DNA of 63,582 bases, filler included, from Octopus bimaculoides (Eukaryota), in the NCBI RefSeq assembly GCF_001194135.2. It is 4 parts of 4 records of this genome, joined end to end, with 100 filler letters (N's around TTAATTAATTAA, not from the genome) between each part and the next. Parts side by side here need not be neighbours in the genome. Positions count along the whole stretch, not along the records: positions 29,588 to 61,050 come from NC_068986.1; 3 more parts are not named here. One strand, 5' to 3'. Below the pieces are notes generated by a model. It was not told the origin of the DNA. It searched no databases and was given only the letters and a program-made list of their open reading frames with translations. Of this stretch, positions 4,928 through 58,860 are shown in pieces. Both the position numbers and the translations under genes were made by a program. How positions within the stretch are numbered: position 1 is the stretch's first letter; the number at the start of each line of letters is the position of its first letter.

Positions 4928-6498
4928 GTATGTACTTTGCTAAAGGTATCTGAGTTGATAAATGATGCAGCTAAACCAGGCAACAGCTTAAGTCTACTGC
5001 TCAAGTAGCCTAAGGTGGGATTGAAACTCAGAATGCAAAGATCAGGAAGATATACTATGAGGTGGTATGTTCAACGCTCTAACATTCTCACCAGTCCATC
5101 ACCATAGACTGGCACTCTATCAATCCCAGGAGGATAAAAGGCAAAATTGACCTTGGTGGATTTGATCTCAGAATGCATGGTGATTGCATTGATAGTGGTT
5201 GTGGAGTTGGGGTTGTTAGTGGTGATGGTTATGTTTGTGGCATGGGTTCAATTTCTGGACTGACTAAAACATCATGTCCTTGAGTAAGTTCATNNNNNNN
5301 NNNNNNNNNNNNNNNNNNNNNNNNNNNNNNNNNNNNNNNNNNNNNNNNNNNNNNNNNNNNNNNNNNNNNNNNNNNNNNNNNNNNNNNNNNNNNNNNNNNN
5401 NNNNNNNNNNNNNNNNNNNNNNNNNNNNNNNNNNNNNNNNNNNNNNNNNNNNNNNNNNNNNNNNNNNNNNNNNNNNNNNNNNNNNNNNNNNNNNNNNNNN
5501 NNNNNNNNNNNNNNNNNNNNNNNNGTCCCAGTGGTTCAGAAGTTACTTCCCAATCATCTGGTCTTGGATTCAGTCTCACTGCATGGCACCTTGGACAAGT
5601 GTCTTCTATTAATAGCCCTTGGTTGACCAAAGCCCTGTGAGTGGATTTAGTGGATAGAAACTGAAAGAAGCCCATCGAGCATGTGTGCATATGTGTGTGT
5701 GTGTGTATGTGTGTGTATGTGCGTTCATATGTGCCCGTGTCTAGACATCATGTGGGGTTGTTTGTTTCCAGCCTACTCCAAAAACATTCTAGCTACGGGA
5801 AGTAATAGTACCTTGCTTGGATACAAGTGAGGGCTGGTGACCAGGAAGGGCATCTAGTCATAAAAAATCTGCCTCAACAAAAACAAATTTTGACTGATCT
5901 GTGAAAGCATCTAAAAGTAGATGTTAAAATGATGATGATGATGATAATGATGGCGGTTGTGGTGGTAGGGGTGTTACCAAGCCATGCTCATTTGTGAGTG
6001 ATGGTTGGTTGAATTTTGTAAATATCCTAAAAAGATAGGATGGTCTTGGCCGGAATGCTTTTGATCATAGTTCTGCTTGATCCAGAGTTGATCTTGATCT
6101 AAACAACAGCAAAACAGCTGCAGTAATAAAACCAATAGATACCTCACACTTCCTTCCTGTAGAATAAATTATCAACAAAGAAGGGGTGATATCATTGAGA
6201 ATTTAGAGTCTTAAACTGATTGTGTATGCTGATGGAGTACAGGGTTCAAGGTTTCAATCCTGGATAATGCTAAGTTGCCTTTAAATAACTGCTTAATCTG
6301 AAAAGATTTGGAGAGGGTAAGACTTAAAAATGGAAAAAGAAAATAAAAGAATACTTCTTAGTATGTTACACCCAGCGACCTAATAAAGGGTATGGTGTGT
6401 GGTGTGCTAAGCGGTATGAATGTACGCATGTGTGTGTGCTTGTATGTATACACATTCAGACAAATACATGCATATATGAGTGTGTACACATGTATATT

Positions 6499-6549
<51 letters not shown>

Positions 6550-8526
6550 GTTTACATACACACACAGACATGTATGTATGTATATATATATCTGTCTTCT
6601 ATCTATCTATCTATCTATCTATCTATATATCTATATATATACACACACACACATACATACATACATACATGCACATAAATATATATGCATCTATGTGTGT
6701 ATGTTTGTATATGTATTTATACATACATATGTACACGAAGCAGAGTANNNNNNNNNNNNNNNNNNNNNNNNNNNNNNNNNNNNNNNNNNNNNNNNNNNNN
6801 NNNNNNNNNNNNNNNNNNNNNNNNNNNNNNNNNNNNNNNNNNNNNNNNNNNNNNNNNNNNNNNNNNNNNNNNNNNNNNNNNNNNNNNNNNNNNNNNNNNN
6901 NNNNNNNNNNNNNNNNNNNNNNNNNNNNNNNNNNNNNNNNNNNNNNNNNNNNNNNNNNNNNNNNNNNNNNNNNNNNNNNNNNNNNNNNNNNNNNNNNNNN
7001 NNNNNNNNNNNNNNNNNNNNNNNNNNNNNNNNNNNNNNNNNNNNNNNNNNNNNNNNNNNNNNNNNNNNNNNNNNNNNNNNNNNNNNNNNNNNNNNNNNNN
7101 NNNNNNNNNNNNNNNNNNNNNNNNNNNNNNNNNNNNNNNNNNNNNNNNNNNNNNNNNNNNNNNNNNNNNNNNNNNNNNNNNNNNNNNNNNNNNNNNNNNN
7201 NNNNNNNNNNNNNNNNNNNNNNNNNNNNNNNNNNNNNNNNNNNNNNNNNNNNNNNNNNNNNNNNNNNNNNNNNNNNNNNNNNNNNNNNNNNNNNNNNNNN
7301 NNNNNNNNNNNNNNNNNNNNNNNNNNNNNNNNNNNNNNNNNNNNNNNNNNNNNNNNNNNNNNNNNNNNNNNNNNNNNNNNNNNNNNNNNNNNNNNNNNNN
7401 NNNNNNNNNNNNNNNNNNNNNNNNNNNNNNNNNNNNNNNNNNNNNNNNNNNNNNNNNNNNNNNNNNNNNNNNNNNNNNNNNNNNNNNNNNNNNNNNNNNN
7501 NNNNNNNNNNNNNNNNNNNNNNNNNNNNNNNNNNNNNNNNNNNNNNNNNNNNNNNNNNNNNNNNNNNNNNNNNNNNNNNNNNNNNNNNNNNNNNNNNNNN
7601 NNNNNNNNAACCATGTTAGACCTAGGGCTAAACAAAGGCAGTCTTTATCACTACCACCACCAGCACCACCACCACCACTTACGCTAACACCATCATTGAT
7701 ACCTCCTCTCACCAACACCACTACCACTGCTAGCCAATGAGGAAGCCGCTATGTGGTCGTTCATCCAACAAAAAATAGCAGTCATATCTCCCTCAAATCA
7801 TACTAAGAAGGGACATACTAGACATGGTCTTGGGTTTCCTGCACAGGAAAAAAAGATGAGATGTTGTGATTGGAATGCTTTCAATCTTAGGTCTATTCAA
7901 CCATGTTAGACCTAGGGCTAAACAAAGGCAGTCTTTATCACTACCACCACCAGCACCACTACCGTCAACACCTCTGTGACTACCACCATTACACTACCAT
8001 CACCATCATATTTACTATCTCTCAACACCACCGTCACAGATGCCTTCTACCAACACCATTGCCATTACTATTGACCCCCAACTCAACCATTATCACCACC
8101 ACTACCACCACTGCTGCCTCCGCCATCACCACCACCATCACCATCAAGACCACCACCGTCACCATTTGTAGTTAGTGGTGGTTATGACATTGGTGATGAT
8201 GATGATGTTGACAGTGCCACTGGCCACATCATTATCAATGAACCAACAAGGGAGACCCTTTATGATCACTTGACCTGCTAGATATTCTTTTACTGTTTTA
8301 CTTGTTTCAGTCATTTGACTGCAGCCTAGCTGGAACACTGCCTTTTAGTTGAACGAATCGACCCCTGGACTTATTCTTTGTAAGCCTAGTACTTATTCTA
8401 TCATTCTCTTTTGCTAAATCGCTAAGTTACAGGGACGTAAACACACAACATCGACTGTCAAGCGATGGTGGGGGAATAAACACAGACACACAAACATATA
8501 CATATATATATATAAATACATACATG

Positions 8527-30940: not shown

Positions 30941-31567
30941 GAAGGTATTCTTTCTAATGTTGAAAATTGGTATATATACATATTTCATCTATTTTGGTTA
31001 TAATATCATTTTTAATTATCTTAAATTTTATCTTTATACAATATTGTTTATTAGCGTCTTGCCCCTTTAACTGTTCTATTTATCTATTTNNNNNNNNNNN
31101 NNNNNNNNNNNNNNNNNNNNNNNNNNNNNNNNNNNNNNNNNNNNNNNNNNNNNNNNNNNNNNNNNNNNNNNNNNNNNNNNNNNNNNNNNNNNNNNNNNNN
31201 NNNNNNNNNNNNNNNNNNNNNNNNNNNNNNNNNNNNNNNNNNNNNNNNNNNNNNNNNNNNNNNNNNNNNNNNNNNNNNNNNNNNNNNNNNNNNNNNNNNN
31301 NNNNNNNNNNNNNNNNNNNNNNNNNNNNNNNNNNNNNNNNNNNNNNNNNNNNNNNNNNNNNNNNNNNNNNNNNNNNNNNNNNNNNNNNNNNNNNNNNNNN
31401 NNNNNNNNNNNNNNNNNNNNNNNNNNNNNNNNNNNNNNNNNNNNNNNNNNNNNNNNNNNNNNNNNNNNNNNNNNNNNNNNNNNNNNNNNNNNNNNNNNNN
31501 NNNNNNNNNNNNNNNNNNNNNNNNNNNNNNNNNNNNNNNNNNNNNNNNNNNNNNNNNNNNNNNNNNN

Positions 31568-32639: not shown

Positions 32640-34420
32640 GACTGGATAGCAGAGTGAGGGTGGCAGTGCTGTTTAGGAAAGGCCTAGATCTCGAGGTACG
32701 GACGATCTTCCCGGACCCAGAAGATAAGTTGGTGGTCTTGGATGTGAGTAGTAGAGAAAGTAGTGCTTTCAGACAAGTCGCTGTGTACGCCCCAACCGGG
32801 ACGGGACAGCCAGATTTCTTCGGACGTTTGGCGGTTTTCCTTGGGACACCTCGCTCTTTAGTTTTAATTTAGTGGGCGACTGGATGGCCATTTTGGGGCC
32901 AGCCGATAGCAGAGAGGGATGCAAAAGTCTCGCAAACCTGTTCAGTCGTTTCCAATTGGCTGACAGATACCGACTGAATTTCCCGAATGTGCCAGTGTGG
33001 ACATGGGTGAGCAGCACCGGGTCTATCAGATTGTATTTAGATAGGCTATTCTGTAGGCCAGTAGATAGAAGTAGCATAGGTTGTCCACAGTTCAAAATCG
33101 TCGGCTACATAGACCACAAATTTGTGATCTGCACAGTCGACCTAGATAGGATCCATAGGCAGGGCCCCGGGTACTGGAAGCTGAATGTATCTTTCCCTGC
33201 GCACCAAGCATTCAGAAACCAGGTTAGCAAGTTAGTCCATCGGAAGTTGGCGGGCGCAATCATCAACAATCGCTGGTGGATTGCCCTGAAAAGGGCTATT
33301 AGAGTAGAAGCAGTAGGATTTATTAAGGAAATAGCCTTATAGGGAGAGCTAGTTAGAAAGCTAGAAGAGGCGCTCAGGAGAGGCATCGTGACCTACGTGC
33401 TGGCGGTGAGATTGGCGCTTGATCAATTCTTCAATGTCAAGCATAAGGGTTGCGTTGTCAGAGCAAGGGTGCGTGCTCTAAGGCATGAAGTGACGAAAGC
33501 CGTTCGCTGGGCTCAAGTGACAGAGGTGCAACGTGGCAACAAATCCACAATTCGGTCTTTGAAGGGCCGGGACGGGCACATGCTACACGAGTCCTAGAAG
33601 ATGTGTACAGAATTTCAGCAGCATTTCGCCCAACTGTTCGGGGCGCGCGGTGTGTCGGGGATGGAGGTGGATTTCACCTACCTAGACGGCATGCCGCGCC
33701 TTTCGACCAAGGATGCAGAGTTTTGCGAAAAGCTGATACCAGCAGAAGACATACGGGATGCGATGACGATCTGCACAAGGGAGAAGTCTCCGGGGCTGGA
33801 TGGTCTGCCCTTCGAGCTTTATCTTAATATACCAGACTTGTTGGGGAATCTCTTGGTGGGTGTCTACCACGTCTGGCAGCAGAACAGGAGAATACCCAAT
33901 GCTGTGAGTCGTGGCGTGGTGGTTATGGTGAGAAAGGACCCGAACAAGGGGAACGAAATAGATAATTTTAGGCCTATAACTCTGCTAAACGCAGATTATA
34001 AGATCTTGGCCAAGGTGTTAGCCAAGAGGTTGGCGCTTGTCGTCGGTAAGCTGGTCGGTAACGCGCAGGCATGCGCTATTCCGAACACATCTATCAACGA
34101 CAACTTCTACCTCACACGCTACATCATAGAGACCATCAATATTTGGAGGCTGTCCTCGCGGCGGCCGGCTTCGGTACCGTTTCCAGAGGCTGGATCGCTG
34201 CAATGTATAACAGCATTTGTTCGGTGGTCAGAGCAAACGGCCATCTATTGGTCGCTCGGTCCGTCAAGGATGCCCACTCTCTCCCCTTCCATACGTGCTG
34301 GCTCTCGAGCCATTACTGGGGAAGTTAGATACTTCAAGGGGCATCCCTTGTGATCTAGGGTGCGAAAGCTCCGTGTCGGCACATGCGTACAACGTCACTG
34401 TAATAGTGTCGGGCAGCTCA
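32640..34420 (+). mobile_element. Tx1/L1-clade LINE ORF2 fragment (APE endonuclease + RT), decayed
   Basis: AVYAP, GDW, YLDR, DHK, GPGYWKLN, KSPGLDGLPFELY, NFRPITLLNADYKILAKVLAKRL, SVRQGCPLSP. Internal deletion near 34140. GC-rich relative to its flanks. Confidence 0.92.
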
Positions 34421-35467: not shown

Positions 35468-36713
35468 GAAAGGATTGAGGTAACTCCTCCTGAAGATATA
35501 GAGTCAAAATTAAAAGAAGAGTGCCATTTGCTATCTCGTGAACTGAACAATATTTCGACATCTTGCGTGTCTTCCACTGGTTCAAAAAATAAATTTGTCA
35601 NNNNNNNNNNNNNNNNNNNNNNNNNNNNNNNNNNNNNNNNNNNNNNNNNNNNNNNNNNNNNNNNNNNNNNNNNNNNNNNNNNNNNNNNCAGGAGGAGTTA
35701 CCTCAATCCTTTCTATATAAACGAAAATGAAGTAGATTGACAAATTTATTTTTTGAACCAGTGGAAGACACGCAAGATGTCGAAATATTGTTCAGTTCAC
35801 GAGATAGCAAATGGCACTCTTCTTTTAATTTTGATATTATTATTATTATTATTATTTTATCATAAGTATTTCAGTTCTCATAAAGAATTTAAGACAAAAA
35901 AAAAATATGCATATTTGTATTGTGTTTTTGTTTTTATTCCTGTTTACGTCTGAAAATTTTTGGTGAAAATACGTAAACACGTACACACATACATATAAGC
36001 ACACATACATAAATATACACACTCACAAACATGCACACACGCACACGCATGCATACATGTACATACATACATACATATTAGCATTCTCCAGACCCTAAGC
36101 CATTATTCAGTTTGACACGAGAGTCTTTTAGTTCTTTCTACTGATTTTAGAGTCAGAAATTTTAGAGTAAGAAATTTTTCATATTTTAAAAAATTGCAAA
36201 CATCTTTTTCAGCTGAAAAATTCATTGAAAATGTATTAATTATCTTCAGTGTATTTTTCAAAATAAGTAATAATTCTTAATTCTTTGTTGTTTTTTTTTT
36301 AATGCATTTTTATTTCATCTTTGAGCTAAAAGTTAATTGTATTTAATTCAAATTAAGATATTTTTTTCTATATCAGACTTTAAAATGTTTCTTTAATCCT
36401 CACTTCTTTGTGAAATCTATTATTTGTTAATAATTCAAATATATTAATCCAACATACTGAAGTTTTTAAACCGAAGATATAAAAATGCTTTTCTGTATGT
36501 TTGGATCGATTTCTTAGATTAAAGCCTCGAAGGAGATGGCCAAGCATAGCCGCCGTCCAATGACTGAAACAAGTTAGAGTTAAGAAATATTACTTTTTAT
36601 ATAAGTAGACTTCGTTTAATCCTCCGTAAGCACTGATCATAGGAGCCTTAAGTCGATAATATTCCAACCGTGAACACCCAGCCATTTTTCTACGAATTCG
36701 GTTTATGTTTGTT

Positions 36714-40111: not shown

Positions 40112-40300
40112 TTATTCATTAAACATTTTCAAAGCTTCGTTTGTTGCTCTAGTTTTGGTTGATTGTTGTAATTTCGCAATAATTGATTCATTAGGTACGA
40201 AGATCATTGATTGATATTGTCCCCTGATTCCGCTTTCATCCTTTTGCATAAATAACACCGCCTTAGACTTTCTGTAAGCAAACAACTGGATACGGAATAA
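40112..40300 (-). CDS. Secreted Cyt-like protein, terminal coding exon 4 (LFRIQLFAYRKSKAVLFMQKDESGIRGQYQSMIFVPNESIIAKLQQSTKTRATNEALKMFNE*)
   Basis: Acceptor TTATTTCTTGCAG, phase 0 matching exon 3. 62 codons then TAA at 40114-40112. Continues the beta-strand pattern of exon 3 (PYFK|LFRIQLFAY). Confidence 0.85.
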   Translation of the reverse strand, partial: LFRIQLFAYRKSKAVLFMQKDESGIRGQYQSMIFVPNESIIAKLQQSTKTRATNEALKMFNE

Positions 40301-42044
40301 CTGCAAGAAATAATTAAAAGACATTTTAATGAAATATAAAATCTTAATAAAAATTCTTGGGAAAACAACATGAAAGGTTTAGTTTTTGAAAATATTTTAT
40401 GTCAAACGACCAAAATTAAACAATGGGACATAGAGACTTAATCCAGTTTAATACCATATTCTGACCCTTGAGTATTTTTAGCGGAGTCCCACTCTGTTGT
40501 AAACCTTCAGATCAGGTTTCCGGTTTGAGGATATTTTCCTCCTCCCTCCCATCAGTTTCGGAAGCCCTGACAAATAAAAAAGGTCTTGAGCATTGCTCCT
40601 CTCTTCTATCCCAGTCATAAAAAATAGCCTCTCAAAATTTGGATAGCTGCACCCTATGGTCTTTTAACGTTCAGTGATCATGTAAGAATGAAGCAGGAAA
40701 AGCTAAAATTCTACTGAGAGATTGAAAGAAAAAAAGTCTTTTTATTGGCCGAGTATGGAGGAAGAGGTTGTATTTATGGCCTTAGATAGCCTCGCTAAGC
40801 CATGACGCGATTAATGTTCTTCTTCAACAGTATGAGTCGACTGCTGCAGGAAAAATATAGGCTAAGAAGGAATACCAGAGAGCTGAGGTTCTGAATAGGA
40901 AGGAGTGTGAGTGATGGTTAATGGACACACAAAACGGGTTGCGGAGAAGAATAGAGATGAGTATATCGAAAGTGACTGAATGTAGATGACACGTGACCAG
41001 CCAGTTCTGAGAAGTAAAAGCTATTACATTAGCAGCAGCAAAAGATAGATAAAATAAAATAACACGGCATATCTGTGCGTCGGTGCCTATCAGTCTTTTG
41101 GCAAGTGACTTCATGTTAATCACTCAAAGTGACGCTTTATATAGTTTATCTACACCAAATAAAACATCCTGTAATGTATAACAACCAGACATCATGGCGA
41201 CCTTTGACATGTAAAACAGTCCAAATTATGATAAACTCTTAGAAGTTTGTAAGAAACATTGTAAAAGATCAGGAGATAAAGGTGATTAAAGTATGTTCAA
41301 TAATTTTTCATGATCTGGAAACAAAATTTGAGTTCATCAATGTAATTTTATCTTTGTTGAGGGTGTGAACTTCTCCGTAGAGTTAATTTCTGATAATTTT
41401 GATAACCAGAGTAAAATGAGTTTGTTTCTAATTCAAAGTTTTCATAAATAAGGAATATGAGTTTGATGTCTTTAGATTAGTGAGTGCGTTAAATACTTTT
41501 GAATCTCATGCTCTTCCTGTTTATTTCCAAGAAGGTTACGAGCTTACAAACCTATATGATTAAAGGCATGCCATCCATGGCAATCAAATCTTCAATTTTC
41601 TGACCTAGTATATCTAAGGATACATTCTCCAATGTTTAATTTCCTTTTTTTTTATCTGACGCAAGAATTTCTAAGCAAAGTTATTCGTCGATAAACTCAA
41701 TTTCCCATTTCTGTCATTCAGCTTAGATCCAGATCGAATCACCACAGCATAAATTCTCGTCGTCTGTATTCTAACTAATATACAATGCGTCGATACTCTT
41801 GTACCTGTCACAGATTATGTATTCCAAGCGTTTCCTTCTCACATTAATGCCATTACTAGTATCTAGAACTACACACACTTCTAGAAGGCTGATATCATCA
41901 ATCACGCTTCTCTGAATTTCTACATACAAGTGTCATCCATGTGTAACGTCCACTCTTCACATCAGACGAGCACCGTTTCGACGAATATATATCTCGAATA
42001 CACAGTGGAAGGTTATATGTGTTTCGACAAAATTCAACACCTTC

Positions 42045-42318
42045 TCACAAGAGCCCACGCAACTCAAATAACAGATACTAAATAATCTTTACGATCATGT
42101 AACACCGAACTCGTCAAATTTAAGTCATATGGACTACGTTTGGAGCGTTGTTGAAGGAGAGACTAACCGACATCTTCACAATACCATAGCTGCACTGAAG
42201 GCCGCCATTGTACAGGTGATGTCCGACATGAAAAAGGAGCATTTAGTGAAAGCACGACAACGATTCTTGTCCTAGATTGAAGCAATCTACGAAGCTGAAG
42301 GCAGATTCATAGAATAAG
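42045..42318 (+). mobile_element. C-terminal fragment of a DD37D (maT) transposase
   Basis: SNLSHMDYVWSVVEGETNRHLHNTIAALKAAIVQVMSDMKKEHLVKARQRFLS*IEAIYEAEGRFIE* (degenerate SPDLNPLDY...EGGFIE). Confidence 0.7.
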
Positions 42319-43099
42319 TTTTGCAAGAAACCACAATGTACAGCCAGTGCAGGAGTGGCAGAATTTCTTGGTTTGGTATGGAATGGAGACATCTATTGAT
42401 TATGTGGCTGGATAGAGTGCTGATCTTTGTTTAAAAACCAATAGCATGTTCTTCAATGTTTGTAAGAAGTAACAGTTCATAGGTAAACACCATAACGATG
42501 CAATTCTTTTGGTAATATTGATGGAATCAGATAACTACTTCTGGTTCCTTGGCAAATTAGCGAAGTGTTTCAGAAATTCTTATCAATTGATATATGTTGA
42601 TCAGAATATGCAGGAAGTGGTTTATTGATTTTCTTTCTTTTGAATGAGAGTGCTACATAGAGTATATGTTTTGGTGAGGGCAAGTATTGAATGCATTTAT
42701 GGAATAAGAGGGTTTTCGTGCGTGTGTGTTCTGTAAATAAGTTGATGGATGTATTTCTGTCGTTGACGAGGAATCAATTGTTTGATCAACTGAACGACCT
42801 GTTCATTCAATTGAAGTGATAGTGGCTGAACCCTCTTCAGGCATATGTACCCATAGCGTAATTTTTTAGTAGAATCAGTGTAACACAGTGTGTAACAAGG
42901 GTGTACTGATGAATTACGGGTACAATCCGACTGACTGATTTCTATAAATGTTCCTTCTACCCAATTTTAGTCGCAAAATATGGGCCGATTCAGGAAAATG
43001 ATATCTATTTAATATGCTAAGCAGCGGGATCGAACTCAAGACATCGTGTTTGCAAAGCGAATTTTTTAACCATTCGGCTGCGCCAGTAATTCAGTAAAT

Positions 43100-43480
43100 T
43101 GTGAGTCTATTAAACGCATCAACATCTACACGAACTGGCTCAAGATCTGCAAAAATTGAAACTACCAATACCACACTTGTGTGCCGAGAGTGCTGCTTTA
43201 CTCCGTTTCCGAATGCATTAATCGGTGTCTCATCAGGCGGTGAAGCAGCTCTGTAGGTGTTTCGGACCATCACCGTCTACTAATATAAGCAACAGTAGCA
43301 CGTGCTTTGATGAGTCGAATACTGCACCTTTGGGTCAGAGGTTTCTAGTATCCTCATTGCTTGTTCGTGCTGTACCACTCAACTCCTCTCTTGAGTAAGA
43401 CGTAATGGCTTGATGTTTCAGCGGCTTCCGACAGTTTTTTAGCAACATCTTATCTCATCCTTCGCAGACAGTCTTTCTTC
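43100..43480 (-). mobile_element. Highly decayed RTE-like LINE fragment
   Basis: KKLSEAAETSSHY and RLIKARATVAYISRRxW resemble the post-RT RIxKARxxFxxLxxxW motif. Confidence 0.4.
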
Positions 43481-43928
43481 ACATAAAGAGTAAGTTACTG
43501 AATGTTATAGATTTTGATAGTTGAGGGGAGTTAAGAGAGTAATAGAAGACAAACGAGTAATAGAAGATATAAAAACCAAACATTAAACTAATTCTTTGTG
43601 TCTGACAGGAATTGATGAGCATGGTGGATTTAAAAATCATGATCATCATGTCTCTTTCTCACGGAGAGGGAGAGAGAGAGAGAGCGAGAGAGAGAGAGAG
43701 AGAGAGAGAAATAGATAGGATAAAATGTAAAGTCAACTCCAATTAGTTGAGATTTGAAATCAGAACCCAGACCAACGAATTTTAAGTACTATGAGGTTTG
43801 GAATTCGGCACTTTCGACTTTTATGGCAATGAATGAATAAATAAAATAAAAATGAAAAATGAAAAATAAGAATAAATAAAATTTAAAAATAAACAAAATG
43901 GGGGAGTATTTGTGGTTTTAAACATTAC

Positions 43929-44150
43929 CTTGAAGTAGGGCTTATTTAAATCAGGGTAACGAAGGACACCCATATCAACGACACTGCGTTCAACGTAATG
44001 ATTTCGGAGAAGGACACTACGAAAGCCTTTGATCTTTGCGCCAGTAGATGCTACGATATTTGCATAGTCAAGAATTTCGATCTTCGTGTCAGCTAATACG
44101 TCTGGGTCATCAATAAGTTCATTTGCAAACCAGTCAGAAACTTCTTCTAC
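43929..44150 (-). CDS. Secreted Cyt-like protein, coding exon 3 (VEEVSDWFANELIDDPDVLADTKIEILDYANIVASTGAKIKGFRSVLLRNHYVERSVVDMGVLRYPDLNKPYFK)
   Basis: Acceptor CTCTCTTACAG, donor AAG|GTAATG. 222 nt, phase 0-0, 74 open codons with globular composition. Confidence 0.9.
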
Positions 44151-44310
44151 CTGTAAGAGAGTAGCATACACAATTAAGTGTGTGTATATACATACATACA
44201 TGATAAATTTTTATTCAGCCGACCCGCTAATTGCAACAGCAGTGGTTTTTCAATCGGTCTCTTCCTATATCAGTGACAACATACACGCATACATATTCAT
44301 AATACTTACA

Positions 44311-44576
44311 TCTTATATATAAATGGCAATTTCTGTCTGTCTGTGTGTCCGTCTATCCGTTAGTCTGTTACCATCTTGGTGCCTAAACCAGGGAACCAAT
44401 CTTCACCAAACTTTGTATACATGTTGAATTAACATCCACCTCAATTATAGGCTAATTGGATTTCAATAAAAATCGATAATTGACCGACTATGGGGGTTGG
44501 GCTATTGTGCGATAAAATCATCCTTTGCATCCTTCTCTAAACCTTGTACACAGGCCGCCAAGCTTCTACACACTAG
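44311..44576 (+). mobile_element. Non-autonomous Helitron (266 bp), in intron 2 of the secreted-protein gene
   Basis: Inserted between A and T with 5' TC and 3' CTAG. Internal (CTGT)n tract and an ATCTTCACCAAACTT motif resembling the 5' end of the 56157 element. Confidence 0.75.
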
Positions 44577-44599
44577 TTGACTTCCGACAATTTCAAAAT

Positions 44600-45335
44600 C
44601 TCGACTAACAGAGAACAGGATTGGCTCTTCCTTTTAATTCCAACTTTCTTTTATTCTTATCTTCTCTCTAGGAAAGAGACAGCGGTGGCTTTGCTACGGC
44701 TCATTTGCATGATTTTTAGAAGGAATCCATCAGGGCCAGTAGTTGAATTCAGGTTTTTCTCATCTAATGCCAGTATGACATCTTTTTTGTTTATGTAATC
44801 AATCTCCAGTGCCTCCCTTTTGTGGGTAGAGTGACAAAGAACTCAGCTGGTTTGCTCACCTGCATGAACTCTAGAAGTGGAGGTGGTCAAAATGATTTTG
44901 AATATTTTATTACTCGTAAGGTTTCCCGTGAGGGAGTTGTCTTTGGGAAGAGTGGCCCTACCCTGCAATTCACCGAAGCAGTTTCTGTGGCAAATTTGAA
45001 GAAGGCTTTAGGGTTTGATTTTATTGTCTATTATCCATGTTTCTTTGTCTGCTCTTTCTTTTTATGGGAGGGTTGCAGATTTTTCTCAATCTCCTCCAGT
45101 TATTTTCGGGCGGGATCTTTCACTGCTTTTGAATTGTTTGTTTAGGTGGTTTGCAATCTTTGTACATCGTCTCATAAGAACTTTCCTTTCCCAGGGAATT
45201 CTATTCTTGTGAACAGTGGCCTTTCTCTCCGGAACTGATATGTAGAATATAGCTTGCGTTACGGACTTGAATTGTTCAAGTTTCATATCGATGTCAGATG
45301 TGAAGAGACATTTAAGCCAATCCTGTTTGAAGATA
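44600..45335 (-). mobile_element. CR1/Jockey-group LINE ORF2 fragment (between endonuclease and RT)
   Basis: KNRIPWERKVLMRR, IDNKIKP and VILALDEKNLNSTTGPDGFLLKIM (GPDG motif upstream of RT). Many stops. Confidence 0.65.
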
Positions 45336-46069
45336 CATACATACATAGTGAGAGAGAGAGAGTGTGAGTGAGTGTGTGAGTGAGTGCGTGCATGTTCCTG
45401 TATGTGTGTGTGTGCGCGCATGCATATGGCTGTATGTGCGTGCGTATCTTTTTGCGTACATGCCTGCGTGTGTGTATATGTATGTGTGTCTGTGTATATG
45501 TATGTGTGTCTGTGTATGTGTATGCATAAGTATGAAGCAAAAAATATAGGCAGATCGCTTTTAAGTGATGAGAAGACTTACAATTCCTTCCTGCTTGTCA
45601 CTGGTAGCTAGACGGTAGTCACTGTAGCCTAGGTATTTCTCTCTGAAAATTTCAGTGGAATTGTCAGGAATCAGAAGGACATTTTGATTCATGAGAGAGA
45701 CGTAATCTTTGAAAGTAATTATTCTGTTGCCCATGTTTTCTCTCACAGTTTGTATGCGTTTGTTGATTCCAGCTATGGCGATCTGTAGAATAGAGACAGT
45801 GAAGACAAAAAAAGAGGTTAATAATAGTATGCATCCACATATCTCAATTTTATCTTTTTATCTTTTATCTTTCATCTTTTTATTGGCTCTAGTTTTGAGA
45901 CTGCGACTATCCTGGGGCACCGCCTTGAAGGGTTAGTCAAACAAATCGACTCCAGGACCTTTTTTTAAAGCTTTGTTCTTATCTGTTGGTTTGTTTTGCT
46001 GAACCGCTAAGTTACGGGTTCGTAAACAAACCAACACCAGTTGTCAAGCGGTGGTTGGGAACAAACACA

Positions 46070-46091
46070 TAGACACACACATACATACATG

Positions 46092-46178
<87 letters not shown>

Positions 46179-46492
46179 GCATATATACATACATAGATAC
46201 ATATATAAATATATATACATATATACATAAATATATATATATACATACATATATATACATACCTATATATGCATGCCTATATATATATGTACATATATAT
46301 ATATACATGCTTATATATATATATAGATATATATATATACATACATACATATATACATAGATATGCATATACATACATATATACATAGATATACATATAC
46401 ATACATATATATACATACATACATATATATACAAATTTATATATATACATATACATATATATATCTATATACATACACATATATATATACCT

Positions 46493-46546
<54 letters not shown>
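46070..46546. repeat. (CA)n/(TA)n/(CATA)n compound microsatellite
   Basis: Direct reading. Confidence 0.95.
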
Positions 46547-46548
<2 letters not shown>

Positions 46549-46798
46549 CAGGTTTCTTTCAGTTTCCGTCAACCAAACTTACTCACAAAGTTTTCGTCGA
46601 CTCAAGACTATAATAAATTAGTAAAAGCCACTTGCTCAAGGTGCCACTTGCAGTAGAGCTGAATCAAAGTCCGCACGGCCAAACTTAAAAAGCAATAGAC
46701 TAACTACCAAACTGACTGGTAGAATAGAGACTGGTAGAAAAAGAGACTGGTAGAATAAGCACAGTAATGGGAGGTGGAGTAAATTTTGATGAACAAAC

Positions 46799-46945
46799 CG
46801 GGCTTGGGCATTCTGTCTCGACCAGCGAGCTGCATGAGGCATGGCTCATCATCAAGCGAGCCGCACAACAAAACAATTTTCAAGGTAATTTTACGTTAGG
46901 CGTGCCACTGAGAAAGTCCCACGAGCCACTGTTTGCCCATGACTG
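46799..46945. mobile_element. Older copy of the same 146-bp hAT MITE family
   Basis: Colinear with 51581-51726 (shared AAGCG(A/G)GCCGCAC, GCGTGCCACT, CATGACTG). Degenerate TSD GAACAAAC/GACTAAAC. Confidence 0.7.
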
Positions 46946-47680
46946 GACTAAACCATTGCAAATGGTGTTCCAGCATGGCCGCTGTTCAATGACTGAAACA
47001 AAAAAAAAAAAGAAAAGAATTCTCCATCACTGACCTAATTAGTGTCATTTTGATGTTTAAAGTAATTAATTCTCTTAAATCTTGGTTAATTGTTCTTTTA
47101 GCGTGTGAGGAAATCATGTTTACAAACTTTGGACTTGTGTGTCTATTGTTAATTTTCTCTGGCATTCAACTGCCCTTTGCTTTCATTGTTTTCTCCCCAC
47201 TTCTCCACCCCGCAACAGACGTGGTGTCTAAATATCTAACAATCCCCACCCCTTCAGTGTTTCTTGATATCTCAAACGAGTGTACGTGGTCATTTAAAGA
47301 GCCACTTGTTCACATCTCGTGAACCTTGGATGATCAGTGGCGACAGAAGACTGATAGAAACCCTACAAGTTTTAAGAAGAAAAATATATTTAACTAAATC
47401 ATTGATCCATTTCCTTTTTTTCGTTTGTATTGGTATAACTCAGCAGATTTTGGGATTAAGTTAAAACTTGTACTTGTTTCAGTCACGAGACGACGGTCAT
47501 GCTGGGACACCGCTTTGAAGGATTTAGACGAACAAATAGACCCCAGGACTTTTTCTTAAATCTGGCAACTTATTCTATCGGGGGTATTTTTTTTGCTGAA
47601 CCACTAAGTTACGGAGAGGTAAACAAACCAACACCGGTTGTCAAGCGGTGGAAGGACACACACATATCATGTACAGATAT

Positions 47681-47728
<48 letters not shown>

Positions 47729-47791
47729 TCATATATACATACATTTATGGATGTATGTATACACACATACACATACACATACACATATATA

Positions 47792-48190
47792 CGAGGGGTG
47801 TTCATTAAAGATTTTCCCTGACCCACTTCCGGTTATTTTAGGAAACGGAACTTGAATAGATATAACGTCACTACATGTCACATTGTAAATTGTAGCTCTC
47901 CACTAGGATTCGTTTGTCTTTTACGGCTGCTGAAGTGGACTAAGGTGTTATTATGGACGCAGTTGAATGCAGATCAGTGAACAGGTTCTTATACTTGAAA
48001 GGTCGTGCACCGAAAGAGACTATCGATGAGATGAAAGAAGTTTATGATGACGATGCACCATTATACAACGTAGTCAAGCTGTGGCATCGCCAGTTCAAAT
48101 GTGGTCGGACATCCGTGGAAACTACTCCTATTCCTGGACGACCACATTCCGCCATTGATGATGACACCAGCCATAAAGTGGAACGCCATT
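47792..48190 (+). mobile_element. 5' fragment of a mariner (irritans/Himar1-like) element, in intron 2 of the secreted-protein gene
   Basis: TA|CGAGGGGTGTTC terminus. HTH region MDAVECRSVNRFLYLKG...VKLWHRQFKCGRTSVETTPIPGRP at 47953. Confidence 0.8.
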
Positions 48191-48804
48191 TTGGATCTCG
48201 CCTCTCACAATATAGAAACATTTCTCATGGCACCAACCGACAAAATGGAAAAGGCACTGCCCACGATGTCATGGGAGATGCGCTGGAACAGCCACTCTGA
48301 CTCACGGGGCTCGCAATTGTGGACAACAATTTCCGCTCCGGTAGCAGTGAGTGAACAGGGATATGGTCCGAGGACCAAGAATACCGGAGGTCTCAACTGC
48401 CACAGACTCGACTATAAACCTGAGTTCGGCGGGTTTTGTGCTCTGAAGGTAAAGTGCCAGAACAAATGCCGTCAAACATTCGGTTCAGCACGCTGCCTTC
48501 ATTTACACTTATTAATCACAATATTGTTTTCAAATGTTGGCATAAGGCCAGCAATTTCGGGCGAGGGGGTAAATCGTTTACATCGACCCCCAATCCTGAA
48601 CTAGTACTTTTTTCGTCGACCCCGAAAGAATGAAAGGCAGAGTCGACCTCGGCGGAATTTGAACACAGAACGTTCAGAGACGGATGAAATGCCGCTAAGC
48701 ATTTTGCCCAGCGCAGTAATGATTCTGCCAGCCTGCTGCCTTATATAATATCAACAATATTAAAAAGAACAAGTCAATATGATCAAGAGATAAAAGACGC
48801 TTAC

Positions 48805-48983
48805 CAGTAAATTTCTGTCCATATTTTTTATGGTTTCGTTATTAAGCTGTCCATAACTAGCTGCCAGGCTACAGTGGTAAGGAACCATTTCCATGTCCTC
48901 TACATCTTCTGTTTTTGATAATTCTATCATTTTACGAGCCAGGGCAACCACAGCACCAGTCGTGCTGAGACCTGCAGACGAAG
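48805..48983 (-). CDS. Secreted Cyt-like protein, coding exon 2 ((A)SSAGLSTTGAVVALARKMIELSK...NETIKNMDRNLL)
   Basis: Acceptor TTTTATACAG (AG at 48985-84), with an in-frame alternative CTGCAG 12 nt downstream (exon start 48971). Phase 1 start matches exon 1. Donor CTG|GTAAGC, phase 0. No stops. Confidence 0.85.
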
Positions 48984-50889
48984 CTGTATAAAACGAGCAA
49001 GAGAATATTTTATTTAATAATGTATGTTTATTAAAAGTATGTAAATGGATAAATTCGTTTGGCTGAACTCATGCTAAAATAATACTTTTAATTTTTGGCA
49101 CAAGGTCAGCAATTGTGATAAGAGGAGATATTCGATGACATCGAATTAAGTGATCGATTTGTACTTATTTTATCGAACCTGAAAGGATGAAGGGCAAAGT
49201 CAACGTCGGCAACATTTGGGCTTTGACGGAATGTTGCTACGCAGTGATAGTTCTGCCAGCTCGTCACATTCCGGACCGAATATTGTTTCCTACTCTAGGC
49301 ACAAGGCCCAAAATTTTGAGGGAGGGGGACAGTCGATTAGATCGACCCCAGTACGCAACTGGGACTTAACTAACCCGAAAGGATGAAAAGCAAAGTCGAC
49401 TTCGGTGGAATTTGAACTCAAAACGAAAAGACAGACGAGAAACCGCGAAGCATTTCGCCCGGCGTGCTAACGTTTCTGCCTGGTCATCACATTCAGAACC
49501 GAATATTATTGATAGCTATTGAGTCGAGTCTAGAGCAATGAGTAAAGAATTCGACCTCGGGAGGAATCTTTTTCTTTTTTGAAAGGTTTGGGGTCCACAC
49601 CAAAAGGCTTCTCCCATAGCCTTCGCAGCTTCTCATTCAAAGGAACCGTTGAGATCGATTTAGTTAATGAACAACTAAAACAGCTACAAGTTGATACTTG
49701 CGAGGGAAACAAGGGCAAAAGAGGGAATTGAGAGGGTTATTATATGAAATGACATTATCGATGGATATTTGGGTAACAAGAATGTACGTTTTCTGAGCAA
49801 TGGTTCACTGTCATCGTCATCTTCACAATATTTGCTGCTGTCTCCAAGTACATCTTCATCTACTATTTCTTCTATCTTAACACTTGATGTCTTTGACTAA
49901 GCAACATATAAAATAAAATAAAGCAGTTAAAAATAAAGACATACTTTACAACACAAGATCTATTTTAGTTAAAGAAGTGTTAGGAAGAAAATAAGAAGTT
50001 ACGTTACTTTACTGAATCGAAAGGCATAGTTTCAGCGAAGGGGCTTTGCTGATAATGTCATCGTGACTCCGACTTTGAAGGGCAATGTTGTGTACGGCAG
50101 TGGACTTTGAAATTACATCTCAACATTTGAAGACAAACCAGTTTAAAGTTAATTTCACTATATTACATGTGTGGTGCTCTACCGTCACCCACACACCACA
50201 CAACACACATGCATTCACACGCACACACGCACGCACAAACACGCGCGCACTCACTCACGTACGTACGTATACAAACACATACACAAATGCCGTTGCTAAG
50301 TAACAAACCGTAGAGTGCAATTGTTTATTTAGGCCTGTCCAGTACTGGATGTCTTGCTGGTGTTATTCAGCTGATCATTGACTTCCTGGTTCCTTTCGGC
50401 CAGTAGATAATATTTTACATGTGTCACATCAGGAACAAACGCGAATAAAATCCCATGTACAATAGGAAAAGAATGGACGAAACAAGAAATTCCTTTGGCT
50501 TTTGACGGAAATACATTTTTATGTTTTCACTTGATAACAATGTGGACAGAACTGGATTTTTTTTAAACAATAAAAAAATAGCTAAGTAAGAAATTATAGA
50601 TATAAACGAAAAACTTTACGGGAAGACTTTATAAAACAATACAATTCACCACAGTACGAGATATGGTATGATTGGAACAAAAGTTCGATGGGGTGCCTAT
50701 TGGTGGGTCGACTACCTGGGTGTCATAAGGCTGCTGGAACAGGGTTGATCGAGAGGTTATTCAACAGCAACGAAAATAATTATAATGATAATTTTTGAAC
50801 AGCATTTGTCACGTATTTTTTTAATTATTACAAAGGATTGTTGGTTATTACGAAGGATATTAATAGGGTTTTCCTCATCATGTACTTAC

Positions 50890-50941
50890 CATTTGAATAG
50901 GCAAAGGACGACAACAGTAACAGCGCAACTATGAACTTCAT
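50890..50941 (-). CDS. Secreted Cyt-like protein, coding exon 1 (signal peptide MKFIVALLLLSSFAYSN + 1 nt)
   Basis: ATG at 50941. Met-Lys, hydrophobic core and small-residue end form a typical signal peptide. Donor AATG|GTAAGT after 50890 (phase 1). An upstream acceptor TTTCATTACAG at 50969-70 implies a further 5' UTR exon. Confidence 0.8.
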
Positions 50942-56156: not shown

Positions 56157-58507
56157 TCTACTACATATGTGAGAAATTCTGTCTGTGGGTGTGTTTGTTT
56201 GCGGAGTTGTTAGCTCCTCCTACATCGTTTTATCGATTTTGATGAAACTTGACACGTGAGTAGAACTCATGTTTGGAAACCTCATGGCATACTCAGATTG
56301 TTGAAAAAAAAATCGATAACAGTGCCCCTGGAAGGGATCCTTATATATAACTAATATATTTTATTTTAACAGTCAAGGGAAATAACCCAATCATTTTCCT
56401 ATATTATTTGGTATAAGTCAAATTGAGTATGCTCATTTTTTAGTATTTGAAATGTTAGAGTTATTTTCACAATTTATTATACAAATAAATTGTATTTTCC
56501 TAAGCAATAGATCCACTTATTTAGGTTAGTGACTTACTCACGTATATACCATGGATGACGATGCCTTTCATATCACTTCAGCCAATTGAGAAGCGCTGCA
56601 TGAAGAACTGTTCTGCTTTTAGACAAATGCACTGTCAATACAAAGGTCACACCCTCTTTACATGTAGGAATATCTTAAAATCTATCTGTACATCTTGAAA
56701 ATGGCCACCATGTATATTTCACAGAAGACATTGCTTGAAACCTAGTTTTGAATCCACGAGAAACCACTTTGATAGCTTTCTTCAATGTGATCTGTTTGCC
56801 CGAACACTGTTGTTTGTAGAGGTCTCCGTGTACTATACTTGGGCACACAATAGATGGAACAGACGTAAGCATGGAACACGCATTGAGGGCTGGGAAGACG
56901 ATGCTGTCTTCAGAAGTGAGGCCATCGGGGGGTGCACACTGTGCACCCTAATCAGCAGGAGTGCTTCTTTCTGTATCTACTGCTATATGCTGTCAGAGGT
57001 CCTACATCATTCACAGACTTTCGAAGACACAATGGGAAGTGTGTACAACTTATAGAGAAGCTTGCGCCAAACATGGACTACTGGAGGACGGTGTTCACTG
57101 GGACCAGACACTGGGGGAGGCAGCAGTCAGCAGAGCACTAAGTCAACTGTGCCAGCTATTTTCTATCATGTCGATGACATGTGGCTTGCGTGAACCTCTC
57201 AAGCTTTGGACGATCCACAAGACCAGCAGAGGACATCTAGAAAGGATTCAAAGGCAAACCTCAGCGGAAATTGCCACGTTCAATAACGTCATTTACAATG
57301 AAGCATTGCTTGACCTGGACACCCGAGTGCAAGCTATGGGAGGTCAAGGCATTGCTACATTTGGTCTGCCTCAACCGGTGCAGGCAGCAAACAATCTCGC
57401 ATTAGAGCATCTGCGAGAAATCAGCTATGACATCAAGGAAATGACGGCGCATATTGCTGATAACGAACACAAACTGATGGAGGACCAACTGGGTGCTTAT
57501 AAAACCATTATTTCGAGCATTGAAAATGAAAGAGGAGAACTTTTCTTTTTGGATGCTTCAGGTGGAACTAGCAAACCATTAGTCATCAACGTTCTTCTGG
57601 ATAAACTGCACTAAATGAAACACATTACCATAGCAGTGACGTCAAGTGGCATGACTGCAACTCTGCTAAGTGGTGGCTGCACAGCTCATTCCTGTCTCAA
57701 AATCCCTTTGGACCTTTCCAAGAAAAAGAAGACAAACTGCAACATCAGTCGTGGTTCTATAAAAGGCAAACTTCTGGGCGAATGCAGGCTGATCATCTGG
57801 GATGAAGCGACAATGTGACATAAGGTTTCCTTTGAAGCTCTTGACATGTCCCTTCAGGATCTGAGACACAACACCAGGCTCATGTGAAGTGCCACAGTCT
57901 TGCTTGCAGGAGACTTTAAACAAACCCTTCCGGTGGTTTCAAAGGGGACAAGAGCTGATGAGGTAAATGCCAGCATAAAGTCGTCCTACCTATGGAGCAG
58001 TTTGAAAAAGCTGAGACTCACAACCAACATGAAAGTGCAGCTCAGTTGTGATGACGCAGACGGAACCTTTTCAAAACAGCTGTTGGACGTCGGTAATGGC
58101 ACTTCGGTTGGCGAGAATGATGGCTGGGTAAACTTGCCTTTTGGACATATGGTATCTGATTTAAAGGAACTAATGCATAAGGTGTTTTCTAACCCGAGAA
58201 ATCAGTTTACATGCCACAACTGGCTGAAAACCCGTGCCATTTTAGCTCCAAAGAATGTGAGAGTTGATGATTTGAACTTTAAACTTCTGGAACAGTTGCC
58301 AGGTGAGCATCACATCTACAATTCCATTGACACTGTACTCAACAGCGATGAAGCTGTGAATTATCCACTTGAATTCTTGAATAGTCTAACACCACCCGGC
58401 CTCCCACCCCACAACTTGCATCTCAAGATTGGGGCACCAGCTATGATGCTTCGAAACCTCGATCCACCAAATTTTTGCAATGATACACGACTTATAATAA
58501 AGAAGAT
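56157..58507 (+). mobile_element. Internally deleted Helitron carrying a decayed RepHel PIF1-like helicase
   Basis: A|TC start and a typical 5' region (ATCGATTTTGATGAAACTT). Helicase remnants: TVHPNQQECFF, YREACAKHGLLED, FFLDASGGTSK (Walker A), TAHS, IIWDEATM, LAGDFKQTLPV, RAILAPKN, SLTPPGLPPHNLHLKIG, MLRNLDPP. Several stops and frameshifts. Confidence 0.92.
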
Positions 58508-58860
58508 GCTCCACCCTTATTGCAGCTCCTATTTGTTCCATGTATTTCTCAAGATTTTTACTCGCTGTTCCCAGGGCTCCGACAATTATTGGTACTACTA
58601 GCACCTTTTTCAGCGACAACAACTGCTTAACCCCACCAAGCTGACCTGTCATAGCTATCGACTTTTCTTTCTTCCTTATCGCATACCTTATGATCCAGCA
58701 TCGTTTGCTTTCATTCTCAATTAACACTATGTCTGGTTTCCTATTCTCTATCTCACGGTCGCACTGAATGACAAAATCTCATAAGATCTTTGCATTATCA
58801 TTTTCGATGATGCCTTCGGGTTTGTGTTCGTACCACTTTTTTGCTTTTCTTGTGTTTCAA
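58502..58860 (-). mobile_element. R4/Dong-type non-LTR C-terminal endonuclease fragment truncating the Helitron
   Basis: KWYEHKPEGIIENDNAKIL.DFVIQCDREIENRKPDIVLIE and VVPIIVGALGTASKNLEKYMEQIG..IRVEHL. Confidence 0.85.

Follow-up and report, generated by a model that had tools for sequence, protein, structure and literature searches.

In a 63,582-nucleotide stretch of Octopus bimaculoides DNA (the window, along which all positions are counted) we have characterized LOC106875293, a five-exon gene on the minus strand that encodes a 280-residue protein with a signal-peptide-like N-terminus. The window is made of joined parts of the genome and the gene lies in the piece from 29588 to 61050. The protein is not an octopus oddity since it belongs to a family found across fungi, plants, cyanobacteria and giant viruses, and the known structures that come closest to its predicted model are the Cyt toxins of Bacillus thuringiensis (Bt) and volvatoxin A2 (VVA2) of the mushroom Volvariella volvacea. 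We favour the reading of a secreted, membrane-damaging cytolysin-like protein, to which we give a probability of about 0.45.

A five-exon gene for a secreted protein

The coding exons (Table 1) add up to 52+179+201+222+189 = 843 nucleotides of coding sequence. The product spliced from the window is identical at every residue to XP_014778869.1 (UniProt A0A0L8GQM4), which RefSeq names “uncharacterized protein LOC106875293”, and the locus itself is therefore already catalogued and not new. The start ATG is preceded by an in-frame stop 16 codons 5' and no in-frame ATG is present further upstream. Exon 2 contributes the N-terminal helix, strand b1 (YHCSLAAS) and the start of helix A; exon 3 the remainder of helix A, helix B and the long strand 114-131, most of it predicted with a local distance difference test score (pLDDT) above 90; exon 4 helices C and D, strand 195-208 and the invariant RYPD...PYFK loop; and exon 5 the two longest strands (217-233 and 236-254) and the C-terminal helix. 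Homologues of the protein reach E = 1e-126, which puts the gene far beyond chance.

A previous sequence-only reading of this DNA had proposed a four-exon gene for a secreted protein of 213 residues with one cysteine. Its four exons were exact in coordinates, strand, GT-AG sites and phases (1/0/0), and they do splice to a 642-nucleotide open reading frame (ORF) for that protein, but a fifth exon (45782-45582) had been overlooked within the supposed intron 2 and the real product has 280 residues. Because the length of exon 3 is divisible by three, the four-exon frame stayed open and looked complete. The omission was seen in the first homology search as a missing segment of 67 residues between NMDRNLL and VEEVSDWF. 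The single cysteine was rightly noted and is retained as C55 in the full-length protein. In practical terms the gene model is thus corrected, and the corrected form was already that of RefSeq.

The exon-3 segment is present in every homologue from all kingdoms, including those derived from mRNA. At least 55 sequencing runs contain one homologue (P0009, 45% identical) as a contig of about 1.03 kb that has no introns and an ORF of 927 nucleotides; it therefore represents an mRNA with the exon-3 segment included, and its length relative to the ORF suggests short untranslated regions in the family. In the tandem paralog LOC106875294 exon 3 has the same boundaries and the introns are at the same three positions (…LQ|II…, …EI|VN… and …FK|LF…), and the exon 2 boundary …LL|IA… is found both in this paralog and in the ortholog of Octopus sinensis. 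The ortholog has exons of 52/179/201/222/189 nucleotides, all flanked by GT-AG sites and identical in length to those of O. bimaculoides. Its introns (CM016864.1:83,850,981-83,872,137) measure 2993, 7454, 5975 and 3892 nucleotides against 1906, 3022, 1431 and 3628 in O. bimaculoides and are thus 1.1-4.2 times longer.

Could the 213-residue product nevertheless be genuine, and the functional protein, as an isoform that skips exon 3? The exon has 201 nucleotides and phase 0/0, so that skipping would preserve the frame. We consider this very improbable. Without exon 3 the protein would lose half of helix A together with helix B and strand 114-131, which belong to the core and are predicted at pLDDT >90, and a skipped isoform therefore cannot fold alike. 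Moreover, the segment occurs throughout the family as described above, and the exon with its splice sites is conserved in both the paralog and the O. sinensis ortholog.

The N-terminus has a hydropathy maximum over ten residues of 2.69, as in all cephalopod paralogs. A hydrophobic, signal-peptide-like start was found in 16 of 16 cephalopod-type members and not in the fungal, plant and cyanobacterial ones, in line with the previous proposal that the octopus protein is secreted. The signal peptide is predicted to be cleaved near SNA|SS, and a mature protein of about 262 residues would be exported.

Contamination or a recent horizontal transfer was considered as the origin of the gene and rejected. 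Four spliceosomal introns are kept in the paralog and the ortholog, and the locus (CM046606.1:2,832,039-2,842,868 in GCA_001194135.2) is on a 117-Mb chromosome scaffold where its neighbours are animal genes and animal transposons. LOC106875293 is a resident, intron-bearing animal gene.

The predicted fold resembles that of cytolysins

The structure was predicted with AlphaFold2 without templates from a 90-sequence alignment of the family, which gave a pLDDT of 84.0 and a predicted template modelling (TM) score of 0.83; the pLDDT was at least 81 in each of the five models. A first run with 12 cephalopod sequences was poor (pLDDT 55) and served only as a robustness check. The N-terminal part of the model consists of a helix (26-47) and a strand (53-60), followed by a core of helix A (74-94), helix B (101-110), a strand (114-131), helix C (138-157), helix D (160-180) and three strands (195-208, 217-233 and 236-254). 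Residues 182-192 form a low-confidence loop, and a helix at 264-279 closes the C-terminus. The cytolysin fold as described for CytC has the order α1-α2-β1-α3-α4-β2-β3-β4, with a sheet that carries α1/α2 on one side and α3/α4 on the other (PMC5390079). The predicted core of the octopus protein, α-α-β-α-α-β-β-β, has this same order. In cytolysins of known structure the strands of the sheet follow a modified Greek-key order.

When the model was compared by Foldseek with 350,542 PDB chains, ranks 1 to 9 were occupied only by Cyt1Aa (6t14, 6t1a, 6t1c and 3ron), VVA2 (1vcy and 1pp0), Cyt2Aa (1cby) and Cyt2Ba (2rci), with probabilities of 0.87-1.00, E values of 7e-5 to 3e-3 and 216-259 aligned columns. 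START/Bet v 1-type proteins followed from rank 10 onward at probabilities of 0.30 or less. The weak model of pLDDT 55 put the same Cyt and volvatoxin families on top. CytC (2MLW) and Evf were not among the top 50 PDB matches. Other pore-forming families (aerolysin/ETX-MTX2, actinoporin, MACPF, gasdermin and aegerolysin) were rejected as candidates, none having a Pfam match in any member or a place in the top 50.

An independently predicted viral member of the family, M1I283, superposes on the octopus model with a TMq of 0.81, a root-mean-square deviation (rmsd) of 2.5 Å and 30% identity, and a second one, M1HBT0, with a TMq of 0.57. The superposition of M1I283 indicates that the octopus model is reproducible, and its overall geometry is substantially unlike that of the Cyt crystal structures. 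The resemblance to Cyt and volvatoxin that had been proposed from the sequence is thus borne out by the order of the elements and by the nine top matches, but global superposition is poor. Of the readings available for the model, a cytolysin-like fold is the best one, and we estimate its chances of being right at roughly two in three.

A family shared by cephalopods, fungi, plants, cyanobacteria and giant viruses

When 1.84 billion representative sequences (clusters at 50% identity) were exhaustively searched by profile, 417 clusters were returned at E <= 1e-3, of which 85 at E <= 1e-30. The cephalopod members are matched over their full length with E values from 1e-126 to 1e-38, and the octopus protein carries the family motifs W..N...D.D, G.LRYPD...PYFK..RI and Q.D.SGI.G. 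All members are annotated as hypothetical or uncharacterised. A Pfam scan of the 213-residue protein, 12 cephalopod members and 90 diverse members gave no family model, and sequence searches of the PDB with the single protein and two family profiles gave no credible match. Sub-threshold Pfam scatter (such as EF-hand and NPH-II) and the best PDB sequence match, ribosomal eL27 at E 0.11, were dismissed as noise.

Among the named members the animals are represented by coleoid cephalopods only. O. bimaculoides has at least four loci on one chromosome (LOC106875293, LOC106875294, LOC106883829 and LOC106883830) and O. sinensis at least seven, and further members were found in O. vulgaris, Argonauta and Sepia. 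Agaricomycetes are rich in members, with at least seven copies in Leucocoprinus and others in Mycena, Galerina, Trametes and Grifola, and Ascomycetes are represented by Trichoderma, Fusarium, Podospora, Aspergillus flavus and Exophiala. The family further occurs in Mortierella, the liverwort Marchantia (3 loci), the fern Ceratopteris, the brown alga Choristocarpus and several Microcoleus cyanobacteria. A metagenomic member (P0061; L012, 6001-6807, on a 16.4-kb ENA scaffold) is encoded beside genes for a major capsid protein of nucleocytoplasmic large DNA viruses, DUF1390 and a Chlorovirus glycoprotein repeat; giant viruses therefore carry the family, and two clear members, the above M1I283 and M1HBT0, are found in the viral structure library BFVD. 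On a contig of Microcoleus sp. AT9_B5 (L011, 4098-9007) the member at 6001-6855 is flanked on the same strand by genes for an Aspzincin_M35 protease, an MVL lectin and an ABC exporter, which may represent a secreted or defence gene neighbourhood.

Two members are fused to other domains. P0135 (468 residues) carries a C-terminal RicinB_lectin_2 domain at residues 365-441 (27.1 bits against a cutoff of 25.6), and P0038 (322 residues, from a JGI metatranscriptome) an N-terminal LDL-receptor class A (LDLa) module at residues 20-56.

In a neighbour-joining tree, which is rough and indicative only, the main cephalopod clade stands apart from a fungal, plant and cyanobacterial group. Cephalopods are not supported as monophyletic (bootstrap essentially nil), since a second, divergent clade of them splits off. 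The three members of Marchantia polymorpha (P0193, P0199 and P0224) fall inside Sordariomycete (Ascomycota) sequences, and fungal branches depart from the species tree. These sequence groupings suggest transfer from fungi to a liverwort, and within the fungi repeated transfer or loss; as to the direction of transfer, we draw no firm conclusion from this tree.

A putative membrane-damaging protein and its alternatives

How could such a protein act? In the favoured reading it would adopt a cytolysin-like alpha/beta sandwich, in which the helix pair A/B, the long strand, the helical layer C/D and three antiparallel C-terminal strands are followed by the C-terminal helix, and it would directly attack lipid membranes by analogy with Cyt toxins and VVA2. 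After secretion the helical layers could detach from the sheet and the C-terminal strands could then join the target bilayer, with oligomerisation into pores or filaments, as modelled on Cyt and VVA2 (PMC5390079, PMC12637454). In coleoids the family would have gained signal peptides and tandem duplications, which fits an extracellular role in defence, immunity or venom. In fungi the same module could be a cytoplasmic defence protein that is freed upon damage to hyphae or fruiting bodies. Many fungal defence proteins have no signal peptide. Apart from the order of the predicted elements and the Foldseek ranking, the genetics of the family are toxin-like, with a signal peptide in the cephalopod members alone, a tandem multigene expansion, a patchy spread across kingdoms and a lectin fusion. 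The true cytolysin fold, the membrane damage and any tissue and target involved are what we infer.

The substitution pattern points in a similar direction. Between the O. bimaculoides and O. sinensis orthologs the ratio of nonsynonymous to synonymous substitution rates (dN/dS, Nei-Gojobori) is 0.89 overall (dS 0.088, dN 0.078) and 0.18 over the three C-terminal strands (195-254), with 12 nonsynonymous changes versus 1 synonymous in helices C-D and 7 versus 1 in the C-terminal helix; these counts are small. A conserved sheet with fast-changing helical surfaces would fit a conflict or defence protein with a preserved core mechanism.

A number of results weigh against a cytolysin. PF01338, the Pfam family of the Cyt toxins, was not matched at E <= 10 by the 213-residue protein, 12 cephalopod members or 90 diverse members, and no Cyt chain was found when family profiles were run against the PDB. 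Comparison by hhalign of the 90-sequence family alignment with a Cyt profile, built from 8 cyt sequences of Bt plasmids, B. cereus and related Bacillus/Streptomyces genes, gave a probability of 0.12% and an E value of 0.46, and BLASTP of the octopus protein against Cyt1Aa an E value above 20. As a positive control the Cyt profile was run against the PDB, where it found Cyt2Ba, Cyt2Aa, Dickeya CytC (4.5e-14) and VVA2 (1.4e-9). The Cyt signature that the sequence-only reading had seen in the protein was accordingly not recovered by any of these searches, and the comparison of the HHpred/PF01338 kind by which it had proposed to check itself came out negative. The Cyt1Aa peptide that it had cited is exact (residues 196-226), and pairing it with the octopus hairpin 221-252 does give the best local window (BLOSUM62 score 22, z = 4.5 against shuffles), but this parallel is post hoc and not significant alone. 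Judged from its profiles, the family is outside PF01338.

Structure and conservation raise further objections. The TM scores to the Cyt and VVA2 structures are 0.24-0.35, below the usual same-fold range, with rmsd values of 10-13 Å, and the strands of the model are only partly amphipathic. Conservation is unusually high for a toxin, octopus and fungal members being 30-38% identical, and polar motifs are near-invariant (RYPD, PYFK.xRI, D.SGI.G, W151, D159 and D161); such conservation across kingdoms could instead reflect a specific ligand or catalytic site. Most members outside cephalopods have no signal peptide. Finally, a literature search under the LOC, XP, UniProt, Marchantia and viral identifiers and in cephalopod venom and mucus papers gave no expression, proteomic or activity record for any member, nor any that would back the previously proposed role in venom, mucus or egg defence.

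One possibility may be that the resemblance to Cyt is superficial, a similar order of elements in a different fold. The protein would then have another role, for example as an enzyme or as a cell-death or regulatory protein that works inside the cell in fungi and that cephalopods came to secrete by co-option. This agrees with the poor superposition on every Cyt structure, with the hhalign result and the 90 members unmatched by PF01338, with conserved Asp, Arg, Ser and His positions and with the rarity of signal peptides in the family. Yet among 350,542 chains the nine top matches all belong to a single small family, near full-length, collinear and in two models, the order of elements is identical to that of the cytolysin fold and no other fold scores comparably. 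We therefore regard a superficial resemblance as possible but doubtful.

Another possibility is that the sandwich is the same but non-lytic and forms no pores, the protein being a secreted binder or carrier of lipids or small hydrophobic ligands, like Evf, a fatty-acid-binding relative of Cyt, or like helix-grip START/Bet v 1 proteins. A putative lipid-binding pocket has been described in Cyt-family proteins, with which Evf is grouped (PMC5390079), and the best Foldseek matches below Cyt are START, Bet v 1 and PYL proteins, which bind lipids or other ligands. The near-invariant polar motifs and the 30-38% identity across kingdoms would also be more easily explained by a defined binding site than by an unspecific surface for membrane insertion. 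These non-Cyt matches have, however, probabilities of 0.30 or less and TM scores of at most 0.25 (at most 0.2 for START/Bet v 1) and no Pfam match, and a dN/dS near 0.9, lineage expansions, patchy spread and a lectin fusion are seen more typically in genes of conflict or defence than in carriers. A non-lytic carrier seems unlikely to us.

Coming back to the favoured cytolysin-like protein, its likeness to Cyt is supported at the level of the fold only, and a toxin function is plausible by analogy. The Bt Cyt toxins (3RON/6T14, 1CBY and 2RCI) are single-domain alpha/beta proteins of similar size with, as far as the prediction goes, the same order of elements, and the hairpin parallel described above is with one of them. 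They show no detectable sequence homology to the octopus family, TM scores to them are only 0.24-0.30, and they lack the extra N-terminal helix and strand, the long C-terminal helix and the strongly conserved polar motifs. They are also made as crystal protoxins in bacteria, whereas the octopus gene is eukaryotic, contains introns and encodes a signal peptide.

VVA2 (1PP0, 1VCY) is a eukaryotic, basidiomycete protein of the cytolysin fold, with a Foldseek probability of 0.99 and the highest target-normalised TM score (0.35). The octopus family is itself abundant in Agaricomycetes, where it has no signal peptide. Unlike the octopus family, VVA2 has a recognisable sequence relationship to bacterial Cyt, the Cyt profile finding it at E 1e-9; the octopus family is therefore a separate one and its members are not VVA2 orthologues. 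The fusion P0135, with its lectin after the family domain, recalls the Cyt1Ca type (Cyt plus ricin B lectin, the “RICIN domain-containing protein” of pBtoxis) in its architecture of a lytic module plus a lectin, but it is the one such fusion seen and the octopus protein has no lectin domain. The viral members M1I283, M1HBT0 and P0061 are true homologues (30% identity for M1I283); they are longer, at 367-371 residues.

In the literature we found no Cyt-like protein reported from cephalopods or from any other animal, in agreement with the previous statement that none was described in cephalopods. To our knowledge no animal Cyt-type cytolysin is known. Cyt-type cytolysins are described as a microbial family with a narrow taxonomic range (PMC5390079). 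On the evidence of the model, what we describe would be at most a new and very distant family with a cytolysin-like fold. If it were a true fold relative with membrane activity it would be a new pore-forming class for animal toxinology and immunity, would explain what hundreds of “hypothetical” proteins of fungi, liverworts, ferns, cyanobacteria and giant viruses do, would offer a clear case of cross-kingdom gene transfer into cephalopods to study and would provide new scaffolds to understand how alpha/beta sandwiches become membrane-inserted oligomers. The fold link, the occurrence in animals, the giant-virus members and the spread across kingdoms are relevant to specialists of pore-forming toxins and of horizontal gene transfer, and even if the resemblance is superficial this is a widespread, well-conserved family worth characterising.

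From an evolutionary point of view these elements lead us to speculate, tentatively and as an unlikely reading, that the family could be a fourth, deeply divergent and so far unrecognised branch of the cytolysin-fold superfamily next to the clades of bacterial Cyt, Evf and volvatoxin. Horizontal transfer, plausibly via giant viruses, would have spread it among fungi, early land plants, cyanobacteria and algae, and an ancestor of coleoids would have captured it once. Introns and signal peptides would then have been acquired in that lineage, with growth into a multigene family of secreted, pore-forming defence or venom proteins, the first animal Cyt-type cytolysins.

Genomic surroundings

The piece that holds the gene is AT-rich animal DNA (35-45% G+C) and the surroundings of the gene are transposon debris (Table 1). 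The tandem paralog LOC106875294 (287 residues, 47% identical) is on the same strand 14.5 kb upstream, at CM046606.1:2,857,418-2,869,682, just past the end of the piece with the higher coordinates, and farther on there is an OPA3 gene. A second copy of the gene was searched for within the piece and none was found.

Table 1. Exons of LOC106875293 and other features of its surroundings, in window coordinates
Feature	Position	Strand	Remarks
Coding exon 1, 52 nt	50890..50941	-	ATG and signal-peptide-like segment MKFIVALLLLSSFAYSNA; ends in phase 1; donor GTAAGT
Coding exon 2, 179 nt	48805..48983	-	Residues 18-77; acceptor ...ATACAG, donor GTAAGC
Coding exon 3, 201 nt	45582..45782	-	Residues 78-144 (67 aa), phase 0/0; acceptor ...TCTACAG, donor GTAAGT
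Coding exon 4, 222 nt	43929..44150	-	Residues 145-218; acceptor ...CTTACAG, donor GTAATG
Coding exon 5, 189 nt	40112..40300	-	Residues 219-280, with TAA stop; acceptor ...CTTGCAG
Candidate poly(A) signal, AATAAA	39962..39967	-	144 nt past the stop codon; sequence pattern only
Compound (AC)n/(AT)n/(ACAT)n microsatellite, ~480 bp	46061-46546		Intron 2, ~280 bp upstream of the exon 3 acceptor
Mariner-type fragment, Mos1-transposase HTH_48 ORF	47953-48300	+	26.6 bits (cutoff 24.1); in intron 2, on the strand opposite to the gene
Non-LTR (long terminal repeat) retrotransposon remnant	32872-34353	+	ORF 33601-34353 with sub-threshold RVT_1 (21.9 bits)
PIF1 helicase and Pif1_2B ORFs	56961-57614, 57900-58601	+	58 and 56 bits
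Assembly gaps (N runs, 478 + 88 bases)	31090-31567, 35601-35688		Genuine gaps in the genomic piece, not artificial linker

The two adjacent PIF1 and Pif1_2B ORFs, about 6 kb upstream of the start of the gene, are probably the split remains of a decayed Helitron-like or PIF1-like helicase gene. In the non-LTR remnant the ORF that precedes 33601-34353 resembles an endonuclease region and has no Pfam match. The microsatellite of intron 2 yields spurious long minus-strand ORFs of the type MYIYVCMY... (46012-46434).

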